DNA of 64,000 nt from sequence record OP599913.1, one strand, 5' to 3'. Position 1 is the stretch's first letter; the number at the start of each line of letters is the position of its first letter. Below the pieces are notes generated by a model. That model did not search any database. It saw nothing but the letters and a program-made list of their open reading frames with translations, and was not told the DNA's origin. A program made the position numbers and the translations under genes. This document shows, one piece after another, positions 3,080-31,231 of this stretch.

Positions 3080-5092
3080 ATGGCTGTGAATAAAGGTCGT
3101 TCGTCCGAATCCACCACTCAGAACTCTTCCTGGACTGATGAAGAAGCCGGCGACAACGGTTTGAGCGCCAGCGTACGTCAAGACACCACCGGTCTGTCGG
3201 GCCTCTTCAGCCTGACCTCGATGACTTCGGACAACCGCAATATGGTGGAAGTCTCCGAAGTCGCCAAGATCCTCAAGGAACGTTTCACCCGTATTGCAGA
3301 GGCTACCACTCCGGAAGCTCAGCGCAACATCGTTCCGAACGTGGATGAAATGACCGCCGGCATCTCCAGCATCCTCCCGGGCCTGGTACTGCACAAAGTC
3401 ATCAACAACAAACTCTGGGTAATGGGCGTCCTGTTCTCCAACAAGGACCTGACCATTTCCTCGGAGCCGATCCGTATCAACACCCTCAACGGTATCCAAC
3501 AGCAAATCTCGGTGCCGCTGACCCCGACCAACTACGCCAACGAAGCGGTCATGAAGAACCTGGTGTCTTACTACACCCGTGTGGCGGAACAGCAAGGCGC
3601 GAAAGGGGTTGAAGTCATCAACATGGTCGTGGTTGACCTGGAGATGCTGAACCACCCGGAAGCCGGCGATCCCAAGGACCGTTCGGCCAAGCTGGCGGGT
3701 TACCTCACCAACCAGTGGGAAACCGGTGTTCTGGTCCGTGCGACCATCGAGATCGCCAGCGCTGGCGTTCCACTGCCGTCTCCGTTCGCGGATCCGAAGC
3801 ATCCCTTCGGTAAAGACGGTTGTGCGGAAGCGCGGGTTACTGCCATCCAGGAACGTGTTACCAAGGCGTTCACCCTGAGCGCTGCGAACATGGAAGTGGT
3901 GGCGGCTACCATCAGCGACCTCAACCGTAGTGGTGGTGTCTCTTCCCAGAACAACAGCAAGGAGATCGCACGCGCTACGGCTATCGTCAGCCTGGCAGGT
4001 ATCACCATGCAGGCTCACCAAGCCAACCTGGCTGCCAGCCGCGGTGCCGCTCAGCACAATGACCTGATCAATCAGTTCCTGAACCTGACCGGTGGTGTTT
4101 ACCCGCACGGCTACCGTCCGCTGCATCCGGTGATCACCATGGAAACCGCGTACGCCGGTGAGATGATGAACTTCAACCAGGGTCTGTTCCCGTTCTTCTT
4201 CGGGCTGTACCTGCTGATGACCACCAACACCGACTACGTCTTCTCTGAAGCACTGCGTAAGGTGAGTGTGGGTCAACGGGGTAACTTGAGTGCACTGGAA
4301 CCGCGTATCGACAGTCTGCTGGGTGGTGTGAACCCGCCGAACCGTCTGAAACTGAATGACAAAAACATCACGGATATCGATGTTGTTAACCAATGGATTC
4401 GTCAGAACGTTTCGCAACACGCGATCTTCCGTTCGAACATCGTCCTGAACGGTCCGGATTCCGCGATCAACAACTTCCTCAGCCGGCTGAGCCAGCAAAA
4501 CCGTTCTAAGGAAGTGGGGATTGTGGTATCGGTGATCGATGCGATGACCAAGAACAAGTTCTCTCAGATCATCGAGCAGAACCGTTCGGCACGCACCGGT
4601 TGGACCCCGGAAAAACCGGTTCTGCACCGCACCCCGATCCTGGTGGTCAACGGCTTGGCTGAAGCGCCCAATGGTAAGAAACTGAATACCTTGGAAGTGG
4701 ATGAAATGCTGCTGGGTCACTACAAAGGTGCGAACGGTGCTCAGGCGATGATGAACTACCTGGCAGTCATGTACGGTGTTACCAACGAAGACCCCAAAGC
4801 TCGTTGCCAGAAACTCAACCTGGAGCTGAACCAATCGCTGTTCAACGGCGCGGTTCACATCAACAGCTACTCGCAAGCGGCGGTCTGGGACCCGAACTTC
4901 ATGGCGGCCCTGGCGCAAGCTATGGAAAGCCTGGGTAGCATGAACGCAGCGAACTCCGCGGCCAGCTTCCGTCCGAATCAGGCTGTTTATGTACCGGGTG
5001 CAGGTCTGGCTACTACCGCCTTTGCAGGTGGTAGTTCCCTGTCCAACCCGAACCTCATGAACGCCTTCCTGGGTGGTTTTGCGTTCGGCTGA
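3080..5092 (+). CDS. chmA: Chimallin, major phage nuclear shell protein (phiKZ gp54-like)
   Basis: 670 aa, disordered N- and C-termini, strong codon bias, immediately upstream of nvRNAP beta-prime and followed by a terminator, the canonical chmA position. Confidence 0.85.
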   Translation: MAVNKGRSSESTTQNSSWTDEEAGDNGLSASVRQDTTGLSGLFSLTSMTSDNRNMVEVSEVAKILKERFTRIAEATTPEAQRNIVPNVDEMTAGISSILPGLVLHKVINNKLWVMGVLFSNKDLTISSEPIRINTLNGIQQQISVPLTPTNYANEAVMKNLVSYYTRVAEQQGAKGVEVINMVVVDLEMLNHPEAGDPKDRSAKLAGYLTNQWETGVLVRATIEIASAGVPLPSPFADPKHPFGKDGCAEARVTAIQERVTKAFTLSAANMEVVAATISDLNRSGGVSSQNNSKEIARATAIVSLAGITMQAHQANLAASRGAAQHNDLINQFLNLTGGVYPHGYRPLHPVITMETAYAGEMMNFNQGLFPFFFGLYLLMTTNTDYVFSEALRKVSVGQRGNLSALEPRIDSLLGGVNPPNRLKLNDKNITDIDVVNQWIRQNVSQHAIFRSNIVLNGPDSAINNFLSRLSQQNRSKEVGIVVSVIDAMTKNKFSQIIEQNRSARTGWTPEKPVLHRTPILVVNGLAEAPNGKKLNTLEVDEMLLGHYKGANGAQAMMNYLAVMYGVTNEDPKARCQKLNLELNQSLFNGAVHINSYSQAAVWDPNFMAALAQAMESLGSMNAANSAASFRPNQAVYVPGAGLATTAFAGGSSLSNPNLMNAFLGGFAFG

Positions 5093-17971: not shown

Positions 17972-18001
17972 TTCTGTGACCCAACATAAGGAATTATCCC
18001 A

Positions 18002-19144
18002 ATGGAATACTTAACGACCCAACGAAGTCGATTGTATCCCAACCTGGATACTCGTCTGGTATTAAACAAAACCATAGGGTGTTCACGTTTCATATGGAAC
18101 GCTCTACTGGGTAATCATAAGGAAGAATACGGTCTTTGGGTAGAGGATCCAGAAACTCATCCTAAACCGAGTTGTTCTTTAAGTTCCTTTAATCAAAAGC
18201 TGAATGAGCTTAAAGTTGAATACCCCTGGTTAAATGAGGTCAGTTCTGTTGCTTTACAACAAACAGTTCTTCATTTAACCAAGGCTTTTAGTGAGTTCTT
18301 CCAGGGTATTCATGGTTATCCAAAATTTAAATCTAAACGAGATCCCGGTGGATTTAACCTCAGTAGTGCAGCGGGAACTTTAGCCAAGGACGGCAAGATT
18401 CGAATCCCCAAGATAAAGGGATACACCACCTGTCGACCTAAGCTCCCGTTGGATCAGGAAATTAGGAACTACAGCATTGTCAAAGACCGAGTTGGGAATT
18501 ACTTTGTCAATTGCTTAGTAACTAAACCTTGTCTACCGAATACGGCTAAAGGTCAAGGACTGGTGGGGGTTGATCTGGGGATTAAATCCTTAGCGGTGGC
18601 GAAGCGGTCTACAGGTGAAATCTTTACCTTGGAGAATCCTCGAACCTACATGAAGTACCACCGTAGACGTGTACGACTTCAACGGCGATTAGCCAAGAAA
18701 CAGAAAGGGAGTCAAAACCGTAATAAAGCTAGAATTAAACTGGCCAAACTAGAACGTAAGGTCGGCAATATTCGCAAGAACACCCTGGATACCTTCACCT
18801 CTAAACTGATTAGCGAAAACCAAGTAATCAGTATTGAGGATTTGAATGTTAAAGGGATGCTGAAAAACAGCCGGTTGGCTAAGCATATCCAAGACTGTGG
18901 ATTTAGCACCCTCCGGAGGATGTTGGAACACAAGGCTAAACGGTATGAATCACCGGTTATTATTAGCCTGGTCCATCGATTTTACCCCAGCACCCAGTGT
19001 TGTTCAGCGTGTGGTATTAAACGTGAGATCAAACTGACCCTTAATGACCGGGAATGGACCTGCGCTGAATGCGGGACCTCTCACGACAGAGACATCAATG
19101 CTGCAACGAATATCCTGTATGAAGGACTTCGGTTAGTGGTCTGA
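18002..19144 (+). CDS. tnpB: TnpB RNA-guided endonuclease (IS200/IS605-type), no tnpA
   Basis: N-terminal RLYP...G..RFIWN; RuvC-I GVDLG, RuvC-II IEDL, Zn finger CSACG...CAECG, RuvC-III DRDINAA all intact. Confidence 0.93.
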   Translation: MEYLTTQRSRLYPNLDTRLVLNKTIGCSRFIWNALLGNHKEEYGLWVEDPETHPKPSCSLSSFNQKLNELKVEYPWLNEVSSVALQQTVLHLTKAFSEFFQGIHGYPKFKSKRDPGGFNLSSAAGTLAKDGKIRIPKIKGYTTCRPKLPLDQEIRNYSIVKDRVGNYFVNCLVTKPCLPNTAKGQGLVGVDLGIKSLAVAKRSTGEIFTLENPRTYMKYHRRRVRLQRRLAKKQKGSQNRNKARIKLAKLERKVGNIRKNTLDTFTSKLISENQVISIEDLNVKGMLKNSRLAKHIQDCGFSTLRRMLEHKAKRYESPVIISLVHRFYPSTQCCSACGIKREIKLTLNDREWTCAECGTSHDRDINAATNILYEGLRLVV

Positions 19145-24769: not shown

Positions 24770-24838
24770 GTGGGTGACCCCGTTCGTTAGTGTGGACCTC
24801 TTAAGGGGGTCCTCGGAATCCCCCTTAAGAGGTTGATT

Positions 24839-27121
24839 ATGCGAGCAACAGCAACTATCAGCAAAGCGAATCATTACTTCAGAATCAACGGGTTCTATGA
24901 GGAATTCGCGGTTCGGGTAATTCTACCGTTTTGTAAACTGAATCTCTGCAAGATGGCTAAGAAGCCAATACCGGGTACCCGGAAGCAGGCGTGGTTTGTT
25001 CAACACGTCTTTGCTCGGTCGAATTATGACAAGAGTGAATACCGGCTACCCATTGAAACCCTTAAAGAGTTTGTGGAATTTGCAGGCTACAGGGGGTATA
25101 AAGAATCCCGCCTGAAGATTCAGGATGAACCGGAGATCGAAGGCAAGGATGTTGTATTCGAATTCAATCCAGGGTTTGATCAGTTCAGGGAGGGCCAAGG
25201 TGAATGGATCGACTACATGCTGAGCGATGGGCACCTGAAGGTCAATAACGCCTCTACGGGCTTTGGGAAGATGCAACCGCTGTACGCGAAGATCAAAGTC
25301 CCGGGTGGTTGGAAGACCATGGGGGAGATGACCATCGGTACCGAGGTCATTGCAGCGGATGGTACGGTCACTCAGGTGACCGGTGTTTACCCGCATGGTA
25401 AACAACCCATCTACCGTTTGCACTTCGAAGACGGGCGTTATACCGACGCGGGACTGGATCACCTGTGGAAAGTGTTTACAGAGGAGACTCAGGCATGGAC
25501 AGTCGTTGATACCCGTTCCGTACAGACCCTGTTGGCGAAAGAGCCAGAAGGGGTATTTATCCCTCTGTGTGAGCCTGAAGACGGTCCAGAGAAGCCCTTT
25601 GTACCGGACCAATTGGAAGGTTCCCGCCAACAACGGCTGGAATACTTACGGCGACTCATGGATGAGAAAGGGTATGTGCGTGATGACGGTAGCCTGTCCT
25701 TTTCCAGTGAGGATGAGGTGGAAAGTACTACGGTTCAATACCTGGTCAGGAGTCTAGGGGGTATTGCCCGAAAGGTACCGTCTACAGGACTGTACCGCCG
25801 TAGGCAATACCGGGTGTATATCAAGTACCCTCGTCCCGAGGAACTCTTTACCTTAGCGAATAAGGGTGGTGACCTGGCATCAAAGTCGGGTAACCAGTCC
25901 CTTAAACTCCGGGTGAGTCGTATTGAATTCATTGGGGAACACGAAGCCCAGTGTATCTCTGTAGCGCACCCGGATCGTCTGTACATCACGGACGACTTCA
26001 TTGTCACTCACAACACCTATATGGCCATCCACAGCATGGTGAAGATTGGTAAACGGACGTTAATCACCATGCAACCCCGTTACCAGATCAACTGGATACG
26101 GGAACTCAACAAGATCGTTAAACTCATTCCAGGGGATCTCTTAATCTGGGAGAATACCCTGGAATCGTTGTATGAGTGTTTAGAAGACGGGAAGTTTGAT
26201 CCTAAGATCATTATTATTCCGATGTCTCGTATTGAGGTCTTCCTCCGTAAGGGGAAAGAGACCCGAGACGGGTTACATATGGATGATTTGATCAAACGGA
26301 TCAATCCGGGATTAAGGATCATTGATGAAGGGCATGAAGCGATTCATCAGATCTTCTTGTCCTTAATGTTTGGGAATATCAAGAAACTCTTCCTGCTCTC
26401 AGCCACCTTGAAAGCAGACGATCCCTTTACGAACAAGATGTACCAGTACTTGTTCCCTAAGCGGCTACGGTTAAAGGAGGCAGAACCCGAGCATTACATC
26501 GATGTAGTGGCGTACCTGTATCGCCTCAACACCCGTCGTTATCATCTCAAGACGGATCAGTTTGGGGCGTATAACGATAAGACGTTTGAAAAGAGCATCT
26601 TAAAGTCGGGTGTACTCCTGGCATTCTACTTTAAACTGGTTAATAAGGCCTTTAAGGAGTATTACCTCAATGTGAGGCGTGAGGGAACGAAGTGCTTGTT
26701 CTTCTTCTCCAGGGTCAATATGTGCGATGCCATGTTGGAACTGTTCAGGAAAGAATATCCCGGTTGGGATTTCGAAACTTTTACTGGGGATGATTCCAAG
26801 CTGAAAGATAAGAAAGACAAGTACTTAAAGCACGAGATCATCATTACGACTCCGAACAGTTGTGGGACAGGTAAGGATATCGGGGGGTTGGTAACGGTGA
26901 TCTGCGCCCACACGGTTGCGTCGACTCAGGCTAATAAGCAGATCATTGGACGACTCAGGGCGTTGTCGGGTAAGTTCAATAATGAGATCGACCCTGCCTT
27001 TGTGTTCCTGGTGTGTTTGGACTTAGCGAAGCACGTGGAATACTTGGGCAAACGGGAACAGGTGTTCTTTGAGAAACAGAAGACCTTCAAGCGTATCAAT
27101 TCGGAATGCTCCCTGGACTGA
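24839..27121 (+). CDS. SF2 (UvsW-like) helicase with intein (phiKZ gp75-like)
   Basis: Walker A STGFGK|T, Walker B IIDEGHE, LSAT, QIIGRLR. Confidence 0.9.
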   Translation: MRATATISKANHYFRINGFYEEFAVRVILPFCKLNLCKMAKKPIPGTRKQAWFVQHVFARSNYDKSEYRLPIETLKEFVEFAGYRGYKESRLKIQDEPEIEGKDVVFEFNPGFDQFREGQGEWIDYMLSDGHLKVNNASTGFGKMQPLYAKIKVPGGWKTMGEMTIGTEVIAADGTVTQVTGVYPHGKQPIYRLHFEDGRYTDAGLDHLWKVFTEETQAWTVVDTRSVQTLLAKEPEGVFIPLCEPEDGPEKPFVPDQLEGSRQQRLEYLRRLMDEKGYVRDDGSLSFSSEDEVESTTVQYLVRSLGGIARKVPSTGLYRRRQYRVYIKYPRPEELFTLANKGGDLASKSGNQSLKLRVSRIEFIGEHEAQCISVAHPDRLYITDDFIVTHNTYMAIHSMVKIGKRTLITMQPRYQINWIRELNKIVKLIPGDLLIWENTLESLYECLEDGKFDPKIIIIPMSRIEVFLRKGKETRDGLHMDDLIKRINPGLRIIDEGHEAIHQIFLSLMFGNIKKLFLLSATLKADDPFTNKMYQYLFPKRLRLKEAEPEHYIDVVAYLYRLNTRRYHLKTDQFGAYNDKTFEKSILKSGVLLAFYFKLVNKAFKEYYLNVRREGTKCLFFFSRVNMCDAMLELFRKEYPGWDFETFTGDDSKLKDKKDKYLKHEIIITTPNSCGTGKDIGGLVTVICAHTVASTQANKQIIGRLRALSGKFNNEIDPAFVFLVCLDLAKHVEYLGKREQVFFEKQKTFKRINSECSLD
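25271..26014 (+). mobile_element. Class 3 intein (248 aa), Met-start, degenerate endonuclease
   Basis: MQPL...DHLW...AQCI...VTHN|T; first LAGLIDADG motif missing, second reads RRLMDEKG. Confidence 0.9.
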
Positions 27122-27969: not shown

Positions 27970-28449
27970 ATGAAGTCTGTTATCATAAACCTCGATCCTG
28001 ATACCCGAGCGGAGCTGTATGCGGATGTTTCCAATACACTCATGGATTTCATCCTGATAGAAGCCTTAACGATCGCTTTAAAGGACTATTCGTCATCCGT
28101 AGAAACGCTCCAAGACGCTATAGCCGATCCTGAATACTACAAAAACGATCCGGATACGAACATTGAACAGTCAATTGAATTACTGCTCGATGTACTGAAA
28201 GAGCTAGACCGACAGGATGGAGAAGATGTCGAGTCTCCCTTTTACGACGTGTCCAGTTATTCGGATTGGCTCAGGGATAAACTGTGTTTAGCCATTAGCT
28301 CCATAACAGATGCTAATAGCCCCTTGGATTTCATGATGTTGAATGACGTCCTCACTCTTCCTGAACTCAGTAAACAGTTCAACTTCCAAGGGAAACACCT
28401 GAATAACCGTGTTGTCATGTTGCTAACTGGAGTCGATGACCATCTCTAG
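27970..28449 (+). CDS. Hypothetical acidic protein
   Basis: ATG 27970, terminator downstream. Confidence 0.55.
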   Translation: MKSVIINLDPDTRAELYADVSNTLMDFILIEALTIALKDYSSSVETLQDAIADPEYYKNDPDTNIEQSIELLLDVLKELDRQDGEDVESPFYDVSSYSDWLRDKLCLAISSITDANSPLDFMMLNDVLTLPELSKQFNFQGKHLNNRVVMLLTGVDDHL

Positions 28450-28461
28450 ACAGTACGCGTA

Positions 28462-28510
28462 TACTACCTCCCTTCCTTGCGGAAGGGAGGTAGTAGTCGT
28501 TTATTTATTT
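28462..28510. terminator. Bidirectional terminator
   Basis: 15-bp stem TACTACCTCCCTTCC/GGAAGGGAGGTAGTA, TTTATTT tail. Confidence 0.8.
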
Positions 28511-28547
28511 ATTTCAATGCCACTTCAAGATCCAGGAGATTGGTCTT
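28509..28547 (-). pseudogene. Orphaned duplicate of the 3' end of the virion RNAP beta-prime gene
   Basis: Minus strand reads KTNLLDLEVALK-stop versus KTNLLDLETALK-stop at 29930-29968; in-frame TAG 6 codons upstream of the K, no start. Confidence 0.85.
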
Positions 28548-28885
28548 GTATTCTAAGAAAAGACAAACCTAAATCATTAAAGTGAATAACCGCCAATCGG
28601 TGTTTCGATGTCTATCTCCGGCTCACAACCCTTCCACAAAGGCCACTCATTCAAACGCGTAGCTTATTAATCCTACCTCCCGCCCTTAACCGGGTGGTGG
28701 GGTTAGTATTCACCTTTATTTTAGTTAAAATCCTTATTATCTCTAAAACGCTCTGTAATGCGTTCTAAGAGGTTTTAATAAAACCCTAGGGTAGTGTTAC
28801 CTTACCTCTGTTTAACGCTTATACGCGTTAATAGACCCTTTAAAGAGGGTATTACCCTATTACCTTTCCATAAGGAACCTTTCTA

Positions 28886-29863
28886 ATGACGATTAACACC
28901 CTTACCGACCTCTTTACCCCCGAGGAACTGAGCACCTACCAACAACATCCCTTCCCGTACAACCTCCCCCTCCTTAAAACAGCTCTGGATAAGAAACTTC
29001 AAGAAGATCCTACTTACGAAGTCTTTATTCCTCTCTACTACCGTAAGCAAGATAAACGAGTCAAGGATGACAACGCCCTTAAGGAAATCAAACTCCATTA
29101 CCTCCTGATTAGCAATAAAGGTAAGATCCTCTCCTGCAATAACCCTGAAAAGGAATACCGAGAGATTCCTACCAGTGTACACCCAGGTGGTTACACCAAT
29201 GCCTTTATTGCTGTACAGGGCAAGAATAACAGTGTAGCCCTTCATAGAGCCTTAGGGTGTACCTTCATTCCCGTATCGGAAGAACTCCTTGAACAGGGGT
29301 ACCACCCTAAGGACTTGGAAGTCAATCACATTGATGGAGATAAACAGAATTGGGATCTCGATAACCTTGAGTGGTGTACCACTAAGCAAAACATCAATCA
29401 CGCTGTTGAAACGGGACTTATGGCATCAGGTAAGGAACATCAGGATACCAAGCCTGTTAAGGGGAAAGTGATCAGAGGGAACCATATTGGTTACGAGTTT
29501 GTACTCTTTGGAGGAAGTAACTTAGAAGAGTACGGGTTTGACCAAGCAGCGGTCAGTAATGCGGCTAATGGGAATCTGAAGTCGCATGGGAACTGTGAGT
29601 GGTGCTTCGCTACGGAGGAGGACATCCAGAACCTTCCCCACACTATCCCTGAGGAGATCACCAAGGATCTGAAGGATGTTTCCCCTTGGATCAAGTACCG
29701 GTTTATTGGAACGAATCTAAAGACCGGTGAGACGATCGTTATTCACAGCCCAGCGGAGGCTAAGGAGAAAGGGTTTAACATCAATGGAATCAGGAACAAC
29801 CTTTGTGGGATTAGTCGTTCCAGTGGAGGGTATTCCTGGACTCAAGAACTCTTAACACCATAA
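28886..29863 (+). CDS. Free-standing NUMOD4-HNH homing endonuclease (I-HmuI-like)
   Basis: ISNKGKI, LHRALGCTF, EVNHIDGDKQNWDLDNLEWCT; C-terminal DNA-binding repeats; AAGGA RBS. Confidence 0.9.
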   Translation: MTINTLTDLFTPEELSTYQQHPFPYNLPLLKTALDKKLQEDPTYEVFIPLYYRKQDKRVKDDNALKEIKLHYLLISNKGKILSCNNPEKEYREIPTSVHPGGYTNAFIAVQGKNNSVALHRALGCTFIPVSEELLEQGYHPKDLEVNHIDGDKQNWDLDNLEWCTTKQNINHAVETGLMASGKEHQDTKPVKGKVIRGNHIGYEFVLFGGSNLEEYGFDQAAVSNAANGNLKSHGNCEWCFATEEDIQNLPHTIPEEITKDLKDVSPWIKYRFIGTNLKTGETIVIHSPAEAKEKGFNINGIRNNLCGISRSSGGYSWTQELLTP

Positions 29864-29877
29864 CCGAAATACCCCCC

Positions 29878-29909
29878 CCCCTTCCTCTCCGATTAGGGAG
29901 AGGAAGGGG
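29878..29909. terminator. Bidirectional terminator between HNH and RNAP genes
   Basis: 13-bp stem CCCCTTCCTCTCC/GGAGAGGAAGGGG. Confidence 0.75.
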
Positions 29910-29929
29910 TTTAGGGTGTTATTTTCAGT

Positions 29930-31231
29930 TTATTTAAGCGCTGTTTCCAAATCCAACAGGTTCGTTTTACTACCTGCAGTGTGATGGGCCTTCATGCGCT
30001 GCAATAAAAATGCAGTAGGAATCAAGACCACTTCGGAGCTGAGACGATGCCCTAAAGCCCCTAGACCTTCCCCACAACAGGTCTTACAATAGTAACCGTC
30101 CTTTAGGGTACAGAACTGAGGGACTCTGGCCTGCACGGGCTTATTAACGTAACGATCCAGGTTTTCAGCGGTGAGCTGTACCAGGACTTTCCCATCCTGG
30201 ATCCACGTTCCTACCCAGTACCCTTTATTGGTTGGCAGGATCGTAACAGTTTCTGTCACCGGGGTACCGCAATCCACGATATCCTCGTTAACGGCCGTGC
30301 GGCCTATTAGACGCAACGTTTCCTTAACCCTAGCCCCACCTTCACCGGTGGACATAGAACGGCTGTAAGAGCCCTCTACGGCCGTATTAATGTAGTCCGC
30401 CAAGAAGTTCGGATCCCAGCCCTCTGCCAGGGAGTTAGGGAGTAGTACCCAGCCGTCTCCTGAAGCATTGGGTTCAATACCGAAGGAAATGAACATCCGT
30501 TTACGCGAGTTGTCAATAAACTTCTTTGCAATAAAGAACTTGCGGCTAGGACCAGACATCACGATCTTCATGTCCAGCGCCACACACTGATCAATAATCG
30601 AGGTGGCAACAACCGGATCATTGAGTTCGTCTTTATGCTCTTTAAAGAGACGATCCCTGAGTTTAATGACTTCAGGACTCACCGTTAGGGCGTCTACACC
30701 ACCCGGTTTAATGAAGTGAGACCCTAACCCTTCCAGGAACTGGCAGTTATGGGAGAACTTCAAACACTGGTCTACACTGGCTTTCCCTTCAGGTACCGCT
30801 TCCCCCGGTGGGGGATTATCCACCATGAGAGTACTCAAGATCTTCAAGATAACGGGTTTAGTGAACTCCCGGTTAAGGTAGGGTTGGGTCTTCCCGAAGC
30901 ATTCCCAGAAGAGAATAACGTTGAAGAGTAAGAGTCCAAAGGTAGTCGTGACCGCTTTACCTTGCAACACGGGATGGAAGTCTCCCGGGAGTTCCAGGAT
31001 TTCATCCATGTAGAACAGGGGTTCATTCACCTCCCCATTCACGGTATGGGTAGAACCCTCTACCACGACATTGAACCGATTATCTCCCACAAAGACAGCA
31101 TAGGGGTATTTCTTGAACTGTCCAGAGGAGTCTTCGTCTTCAAACTGGATCGTGATAATCGATTGAATAGCCGCCTTTTCGTTATAGGCTCGGTTATTCA
31201 GGAAGAGTTTAAGGTAGTCGAGTTTAGTCAT
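29930..31231 (-). CDS. rpoC: Virion RNA polymerase beta-prime middle subunit (phiKZ gp80-like)
   Basis: GSYSRSMSTGEGG bridge-helix region, DCGT, RVPQFC...CKTCCG Zn site, trigger-loop-like RMKAHH. Confidence 0.85.
   Translation of the reverse strand: MTKLDYLKLFLNNRAYNEKAAIQSIITIQFEDEDSSGQFKKYPYAVFVGDNRFNVVVEGSTHTVNGEVNEPLFYMDEILELPGDFHPVLQGKAVTTTFGLLLFNVILFWECFGKTQPYLNREFTKPVILKILSTLMVDNPPPGEAVPEGKASVDQCLKFSHNCQFLEGLGSHFIKPGGVDALTVSPEVIKLRDRLFKEHKDELNDPVVATSIIDQCVALDMKIVMSGPSRKFFIAKKFIDNSRKRMFISFGIEPNASGDGWVLLPNSLAEGWDPNFLADYINTAVEGSYSRSMSTGEGGARVKETLRLIGRTAVNEDIVDCGTPVTETVTILPTNKGYWVGTWIQDGKVLVQLTAENLDRYVNKPVQARVPQFCTLKDGYYCKTCCGEGLGALGHRLSSEVVLIPTAFLLQRMKAHHTAGSKTNLLDLETALK

Follow-up and report, generated by a model that had tools for sequence, protein, structure and literature searches.

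The stretch of DNA analysed here (the window) is the final 64 kb (64,000 nucleotides, nt) of sequence record OP599913.1, the genome of a nucleus-forming, EL-like jumbo phage, Pseudomonas phage IR-QUMS-PaBa1-GHS-2021. Immediately past the stop codon of a gene for a virion RNA polymerase (vRNAP) subunit, and convergent to it, the window most probably carries a free-standing homing-endonuclease cassette with an HNH gene, and not an intron. Comparison with relatives shows that the cassette arrives with a terminator and with the donor's version of the final 58-84 nt of the polymerase gene. The gene end now read in frame (copy A) is the foreign one, and the recipient's own end is left untranslated beyond the HNH gene. 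The features of the locus are as follows, from the start of the polymerase gene downstream.

29930-31231, minus strand: virion RNA polymerase beta'-like subunit gene (EL gp44; probable phiKZ gp80 ortholog), an open reading frame (ORF) of 433 codons
29930-29987, minus strand: foreign co-converted tract, recognized by its divergence from EL, i.e., the last 58 nt of the polymerase gene with the trigger-loop-like codons and copy A
29930-29968, minus strand: copy A, the in-frame real end of the polymerase gene, 39 nt aaaacgaacctgttggatttggaaacagcgcttaaataa, peptide KTNLLDLETALK-stop
29878-29909: cassette terminator hairpin common to the convergent polymerase and HNH genes, loop at 29891-29896, not in EL
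28886-29863, plus strand: free-standing I-HmuI-like HNH endonuclease gene, 325 amino acid residues, matching Pfam HNH_3 and PHROG HNH families
28775-28885, plus strand: region upstream of the HNH gene, within the cassette, near-identical in GXNNE2 and in Logan contigs L037-L040 up to ttattaaaa
28764-28774, minus strand: copy B, an 11-nt partial third end (aacctcttaga) identical to EL codons N-L-L-D(ga)
28548-28763: spacer of 216 base pairs (bp), in this phage only, for which no homolog was found
28509-28547, minus strand: copy C, a stranded and untranslated full end of 12 codons plus stop, 39 nt aagaccaatctcctggatcttgaagtggcattgaaataa, peptide KTNLLDLEVALK-stop
28462-28495: native terminator of the locus, a hairpin with a 15-bp stem and loop at 28477-28480, located directly 3' of the gene in EL

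Two similar gene ends, at 29930-29968 and 28509-28547, had been described in a first-pass annotation made from the letters of the window, and their coordinates and likeness were reproduced exactly. Copies A and C are identical in 11 of 12 residues, have 26 of 39 bases in common, and lie 1421 bp apart. The best peptide match in 2000 shuffles of the intervening 1.6 kb was 7/12, and the likeness is therefore not due to chance. The polymerase ORF ends on the minus strand with ...MKAHHTAGSKTNLLDLETALK-stop. Upstream of copy C an in-frame stop is found 7 codons away with no start codon between, so copy C is not translated on its own. The terminator that had been noted after the distal copy is the strong hairpin directly behind copy C. 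An HNH gene does lie between the two ends, as the same annotation had it, and it was found to lie on the plus strand and to converge on the polymerase gene, with which it shares a hairpin; the third, partial copy had been missed.

The polymerase ORF was assigned to PHROG 2962 (E 4e-143), and its protein is 98% identical to EL gp44. Near its end the gene encodes MKAHHTAGS, which we take to resemble the trigger loop of bacterial beta' subunits. No sequence match of the subunit was found in the PDB. In OBP, N1M2, and ZPAH34 the homologous genes bear the annotation virion-associated RNA polymerase beta'. The match in phiKZ adjoins PHIKZ079, and its counterpart is therefore most likely gp80, a vRNAP subunit (PMC10612078).

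The comparison with relatives lacking the HNH gene, proposed in the first-pass annotation as a way to recognize the ancestral end, bore out its reading. The window is collinear with EL at 97.4-97.6% identity over 49 kb, and the sole large indel is the insert of 1416 bp at 28530-29945. The site is empty in EL, phiRU, HHBS8_1, and HHBS47_1, which all have one gene end (...HHTAGSRTNLLDLEMALK-stop) followed directly by the terminator, and no codons of A type or C type. Presence or absence of the cassette is polymorphic among phages that are about 97% identical. The polymerase gene of the window differs from that of EL by 2-4 nt per 100 nt, but by 18 nt in its last 58 nt, nearly all in third positions or synonymous, while EL-like sequence resumes inside copy C. 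The diverged tract starts at gene nt 1245 in the window, 1242 in MIZ-Pa99, and 1219 in GXNNE2; a sharp foreign tract with variable left ends is typical of co-conversion. The foreign tract does not start right after MKAHHTAGS, where the breakpoint had been put: synonymous recoding already spans those codons from gene nt 1245 (window position 29987). The right junctions fall close together, that of copy C at gene nt 1264 and those of copy B and of the short remnant in related phages at 1270.

The EL-like genomes and contigs are in five states at this site.

Naive, empty site: EL, phiRU, HHBS8_1, and HHBS47_1
Occupied, short remnant NLLDLEVALK-stop from gene nt 1270: GXNNE2, GXNNA8, and Logan contigs L037-L040
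Occupied, three copies: the window
Degenerate, copy A, terminator, and the last ~210 nt of the HNH gene fused to a copy-C-type remnant: vB_PQ1 (poor assembly)
HNH gene lost, A-type codons fused to the old end (...ttggatttggag joined to tggcattgaaataa): MIZ-Pa99

In GXNNE2 and the Logan contigs, the remnant starts at the copy B junction and runs through the stop codon. Contigs L037-L040 have an HNH gene 99% identical to that of the window and an identical copy A, and the GXNNE2 HNH gene is 91% identical to the window-like one. The short remnant is present with both cassette sublineages and is therefore probably the older form. The hybrid end of MIZ-Pa99 (L016, 1650-1672) is one base short of the in-frame product, and its polymerase would end with LEWH, not LEVALK; this is either a real tolerated frameshift or a sequencing error. 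The loops of the two terminators that flank the cassette are found in both orientations, with the stems unchanged: loop 29891-29896 is ctaatc in the window and its reverse complement, gattag, in GXNNE2 and vB_PQ1, and loop 28477-28480 is gcaa in the window and its reverse complement, ttgc, in EL and GXNNE2. The pattern resembles a flip-flop of hairpins, e.g., by template switching at palindromes.

These states also bear on the order of events. Loss through the repeats leaves a recoded scar and the EL-type ends have no such codons, so EL is probably naive and not a secondary loser. If the HNH gene and the repeated ends were ancestral and had been lost in the EL types, the association would have to be old, as HNH relatives at this locus in many distant relatives suggest, and the loss in MIZ-Pa99 confirms that repeat-mediated deletion does happen. 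Such a loss, however, leaves A-type codons, and EL, phiRU, and the two HHBS phages are free of both recoded types. A local duplication unrelated to homing does not agree with copies that differ at 13 of 39 bases with a synonymous bias, unlike a fresh or target-site duplication, and an assembly artefact does not agree with a structure that recurs in independently sequenced genomes and metagenome contigs. Ancestral presence, duplication, and artefact are together considered highly improbable.

The arrangement seems to be free of splicing, in agreement with the first-pass annotation. With copy A the polymerase ORF is complete, with the ancestral 433 codons and its own stop, as in EL, L006, L007, L009, and L021 (contigs and genomes of relatives are designated by L numbers). 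An Rfam scan of positions 28000-30500 (2.5 kb) gave no family at E<=1, a scan of positions 28480-28900 (421 nt) gave chance-level matches only at E<=10, and no junction with 5' U and 3' G that restores the reading frame was found in a manual search. A group I or other self-splicing intron with an antisense HNH gene would require that splicing joins the polymerase gene to the distal copy, and that copy A is exon-like intron sequence. HNH endonucleases of chimalliviruses can indeed be intron-encoded in vRNAP genes (PhiPA3 gp210, PMC11620839), and the distal copy has the same orientation as the gene and is followed by the native terminator. This explanation is nevertheless scarcely credible, as neither scan detected a ribozyme core, no frame-restoring U/G junction is available, and copy A gives exactly the ancestral length and is followed by a terminator hairpin. 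Moreover, GXNNE2 and four Logan contigs hold a 10-codon remnant and no spacer, so that no common RNA core of an intron is left among the occupied genomes. Folds of both spacer strands, with unremarkable z-scores (z = -1.8 and -2.7), gave the intron no support either.

For the free-standing cassette, the following course of events can be proposed. Stranded copies start at codon 412-413 (L046, L042), 422 (copy C), and 424 (short remnant), a pattern that would put the break within the trigger-loop-like codons or immediately behind them. The nuclease would nick or cut HNH-less alleles there, at about gene nt 1233-1270. On the left side of the break, repair would proceed by homologous copying from an HNH-carrying genome and would obligatorily co-convert the stretch from the cut to the HNH gene, bringing in a replacement end that is synonymously saturated and presumably uncuttable. 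In a founding event between lineages, the right side would be joined without homology at or near the break, and the recipient's end would be kept from the break onward. Later, the stranded end with its native flank would serve as a right homology arm beside the cut, which would allow intron-like homing with no splicing. Recombination between the repeated ends would remove the cassette, with a recoded hybrid allele as the result. If the enzyme is a nickase, one-ended breaks at replication forks would favour one-sided events, although this is speculation.

The HNH protein has a HNH_3 catalytic domain (PF13392) at residues 136-169, with E 1.7e-9 and 37.6 bits (cut-off 24.8). The motif NHIDGDKQNWDLDNLEW of this domain is intact and aligns with I-HmuI, which is also the closest solved structure by sequence (1U3E, E 2e-4 over ~125 residues). 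The C-terminal third has no Pfam match, and weak PHROG matches of DNA-binding-module type were obtained for residues 271-320. The ortholog in L009, which is 52% identical and in the same position, has a weak match to PF22083 (NUMOD-like tail) of 18.3 bits, below the cut-off of 27. Relatives of the HNH protein with 46-58% identity are mostly encoded convergently behind the same gene of 432-434 residues in many uncultured relatives, and in Klebsiella phage N1M2 a related HNH gene is convergent to the vRNAP beta' gene. From this distribution, the association of the HNH gene with the polymerase locus appears to be long-standing. Shortened forms of 167-188 residues, which lack the C-terminal half, are located at the same locus in L010-L014 and L021; possible readings are endonucleases in decay, proteins in two pieces, or domesticated forms.

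A search for HNH genes with protein-level direct repeats on either side had also been proposed in the first-pass annotation. In about 25 lineages, loci containing a related HNH gene were scanned across that gene for such repeats, with shuffle controls. End replacement was found in five independent cases, the EL group included, and in three different genes. The four further cases, two of them at the same polymerase gene and two at other genes, are listed below.

L042: same polymerase gene, in-frame end KAAHIAGSKTNLLDLEVVLK-stop, stranded end KAAHVAGSKTNILDLDVALK-stop followed by an A-run and a terminator
L046: same polymerase gene, in-frame end MKAQHQAGGAVVTLDLATAIKT-stop, stranded end MKAQHQAGGSVVYLDLVTAIRA-stop
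Aeromonas phage ZPAH34: helicase/terminase-like gene, in-frame end RKRKGIFTKKMKTFEPIDSGVTV-stop followed by a hairpin and a same-strand HNH gene, stranded end RKRKGIFTKKMKVFEPIDSGVTV-stop
Klebsiella phage phiKp_32: small gene convergent with the HNH gene, in-frame end foreign from nt 303 of 378

In all five cases the foreign end is in frame and the native end is displaced. The stranded copies of L042 and L046 include the trigger-loop-like codons. The DNA downstream of the stranded copy in ZPAH34 matches the HNH-less phage AerS_266. The clearest displaced native end is that of phiKp_32, whose stranded copy agrees in 68 of 69 nt with the genuine end of the gene in Miami, a phage without the HNH gene. 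The HNH gene is convergent to its target in the window, L042, L046, and phiKp_32, and only in ZPAH34 is it on the same strand.

The HNH gene could alternatively be a resident domesticated nuclease, acting for example in transcription termination, DNA processing, or defence, and the stranded ends could be incidental scars of illegitimate recombination with no role in mobility. Its long syntenic retention, which includes the forms of 167-188 residues (L010-L014, L021), and the fact that most related loci have no stranded copy would be expected under such an explanation. It is rated as unlikely, because presence and absence are polymorphic at 97% genome identity, co-conversion tracts vary in extent, truncation and loss occur in close relatives, and a foreign end in frame with the native one displaced was found in five independent cases and three genes.

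Several points weigh against a mobile cassette that replaces gene ends in the manner proposed. The position of the cut is a predicted one, and so is the resistance of copy A to it. The other lineages with related HNH genes among the approximately 25 surveyed have no stranded copy, and the duplicated end may be a scar left now and then and no regular part of the unit. The search for a donor with an A-type end gave a match of 77% over 66 nt at best and no such donor. The HNH gene is on the strand opposite to the polymerase gene, and no promoter was identified for it, the counts in a sigma-70 scan being at shuffle level; EL-like jumbo phages transcribe with their own polymerases, which limits the use of such a scan. 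The spacer and the 11-nt copy B are not accounted for by a single event. Finally, copy C is not simply the old end of EL and was once a working coding allele elsewhere. It differs from EL at 12 bases, all within the first 9 codons, of which seven encode the same residue and the others change R to K and M to V; with differences almost only synonymous, copy C must have evolved as coding sequence. The structure suggested in the first-pass annotation, an HNH cassette with a replacement end and its own terminator that strands the old end, is supported, with the qualification that the first 9 codons of copy C are recoded; the cleavage resistance and the weapon role suggested with it are conjectural.

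The end most similar to copy C is that of L007 (33/39), and the same recoded copy is present in vB_PQ1. Only the last 12-18 nt of copy C and everything downstream are EL-like. The window exceeds the short-remnant form by 234 bp (28530-28763), and this extra layer is probably secondary and came from a second recombination event. As a best guess, made with low confidence, the partner was another stranded-end cassette. The spacer, which makes up most of this layer, has a hairpin resembling a plus-strand terminator at 28668-28708. Most of the spacer lies between two direct copies of the 7-bp sequence TCTTAGA, at 28764-28770 and 28552-28558, an arrangement like that of a target-site duplication. 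The spacer showed neither terminal inverted repeats nor coding capacity. Blastn of the spacer against 50,697 phage records recovered its own phage only, plus a short hairpin match. No repeat of it was found in the rest of the window, and a single exact-match probe of IMG/VR was negative. A 19-mer of the spacer had 10 matches in 596 Gb of cellular genomes, which is about the chance expectation, none of them extending beyond 26 nt. No Rfam family, tRNA, or tmRNA was recognized in it. When the spacer was treated as a diverged series of gene end, terminator, and end of the next gene, alignments were weakly above shuffles (z = 1.6-5.6), mostly because of the terminator hairpin, and this origin is not claimed. 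Exact probes for copies A and C in IMG/VR gave nothing, a scan of IMG/VR with the HNH peptide gave a single distant match only, and a metagenome scan gave three loci, of which one was useful.

A 26-nt hairpin, ttagaacgcattacagagcgttttag, is located at the left end of the spacer (28743-28768) and overlaps copy B. The identical hairpin occurs in a 371-kb IMG/VR contig and in Kaldavass, a jumbo phage of Erwinia, in which additional G-C pairs together with a run of T turn it into a terminator. T5-like phages have a similar sequence in an unannotated region near gene A2. The same hairpin or similar sites were found in L005 (2510-2535), L004 (2001-2055), and L015 (3305-3330).

The principle of end replacement has been known from fungal mitochondria since 1994. 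Hybrid genes formed by so-called mORFs were described for atp6 of Allomyces macrogynus (Paquin, Laforest and Lang 1994, as cited in PMC3630166), for atp6, atp9, cox2, and nad3 of Glomus (PMC3630166), and for cob and atp6 of Endoconidiophora (PMC6279837). There too, an endonuclease ORF lies in the 3' part of an essential gene, a foreign C-terminal piece is in frame, the native piece is displaced downstream, the two copies are alike as proteins and diverged as DNA, and no splicing takes place. The fungal elements reside in organelle genomes and encode enzymes of the LAGLIDADG or GIY-YIG type, as a rule on the strand of the host gene and in many cases in phase with it, whereas the phage cases have an I-HmuI-like HNH enzyme, convergent in four of five cases, with its own terminator, in lytic jumbo phages. 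Unlike the fungal examples, the EL-like population displays naive, occupied, degenerate, and lost states together.

Among phages, the free-standing endonucleases of T-even phages that spread by intronless homing are comparable, namely SegF and SegG (Belle et al. 2002, as cited in PMC12908238) and MobE (PMC2790892). As is proposed here, an intergenic endonuclease lies beside the conserved gene that it cuts and spreads by break repair with obligatory co-conversion of the flanks. The difference is that in the window the right junction is inside the target gene and a stranded end remains. To our knowledge, homology is needed on both sides in the SegF, SegG, and MobE cases, and no duplicated gene end is left. 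PhiPA3 gp210 is an intron-encoded HNH nicking endonuclease that targets the vRNAP gene gp178 of phiKZ; silent recoding protects the target, and a competitive advantage in co-infection was demonstrated (PMC11620839). The window shares with it a chimallivirus HNH gene tied to a conserved site of a vRNAP gene and synonymous recoding, here read from sequence alone, but gp210 is located inside a self-splicing intron in the gene of a different vRNAP subunit, and no intron is present here. I-HmuI (PDB 1U3E) is an intron-encoded nickase of the SPO1 DNA polymerase gene, while the HNH gene of the window is free-standing and is likened to it by sequence only. No phage description of an end duplication around a homing endonuclease was found in the literature, the coverage of which was incomplete, so that absence is not proven.

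In the usual account, homing endonucleases need a self-splicing intron or an intein inside conserved coding sequence (review PMC12908238). The phage loci point to a third route, in which a spare gene end is carried along. It strikes the trigger-loop-like vRNAP region in at least three lineages and two other genes as well, and it would explain short, synonymously saturated patches at gene ends of otherwise near-identical phages. An HNH gene flanked by protein-level direct repeats is a sequence signature that maps likely cut sites with no need of experiments. The Pseudomonas phages, in which naive, occupied, degenerate, and scarred alleles all occur naturally, are a tractable system for studies of homing and of phage-phage interference. 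A wider proposal, put forward only tentatively, is that this clade of HNH enzymes homes in nucleus-forming jumbo phages by end replacement as a regular strategy favoured by selection, comprising a cut in catalytic-motif codons, an immune substitute end, a stranded end kept as right homology arm, and use as an interference weapon against co-infecting relatives. If true, essential coding sequence could be invaded with neither an intron nor an intein, and the weapon would act when relatives share a cell and a phage nucleus.

Other mobile elements were noticed in the same genomes. The helicase/terminase-like gene at 24833-27121 of the window, three genes from the cassette, is a mobile-element hot spot in relatives (L039, 1-976; L036, 1-1214; L028, 1683-3215). 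A Logan variant of this gene encodes 856 residues in place of 760 and has a LAGLIDADG_3 match, probably due to an intein. In AerS_266 the ortholog carries the annotation DOD-type homing endonuclease, and the ZPAH34 ortholog is the one with the HNH end replacement. HHBS8_1, naive at the polymerase site, has a different HNH gene (27% identical; L026, 2339-3391) after a gene of the tail-fibre region, and no flanking duplication was detected around it. In L047 and L048, at ~3472-4300, a 43%-identical HNH gene follows a divergent DNA polymerase gene; the two differ by ~780 bp between this HNH gene and the next gene, which is another polymorphic insertion. The region of the window homologous to EL gp37 (~17999-19141), annotated as 'transposase' in EL, is located upstream of two large RNA polymerase subunit genes.

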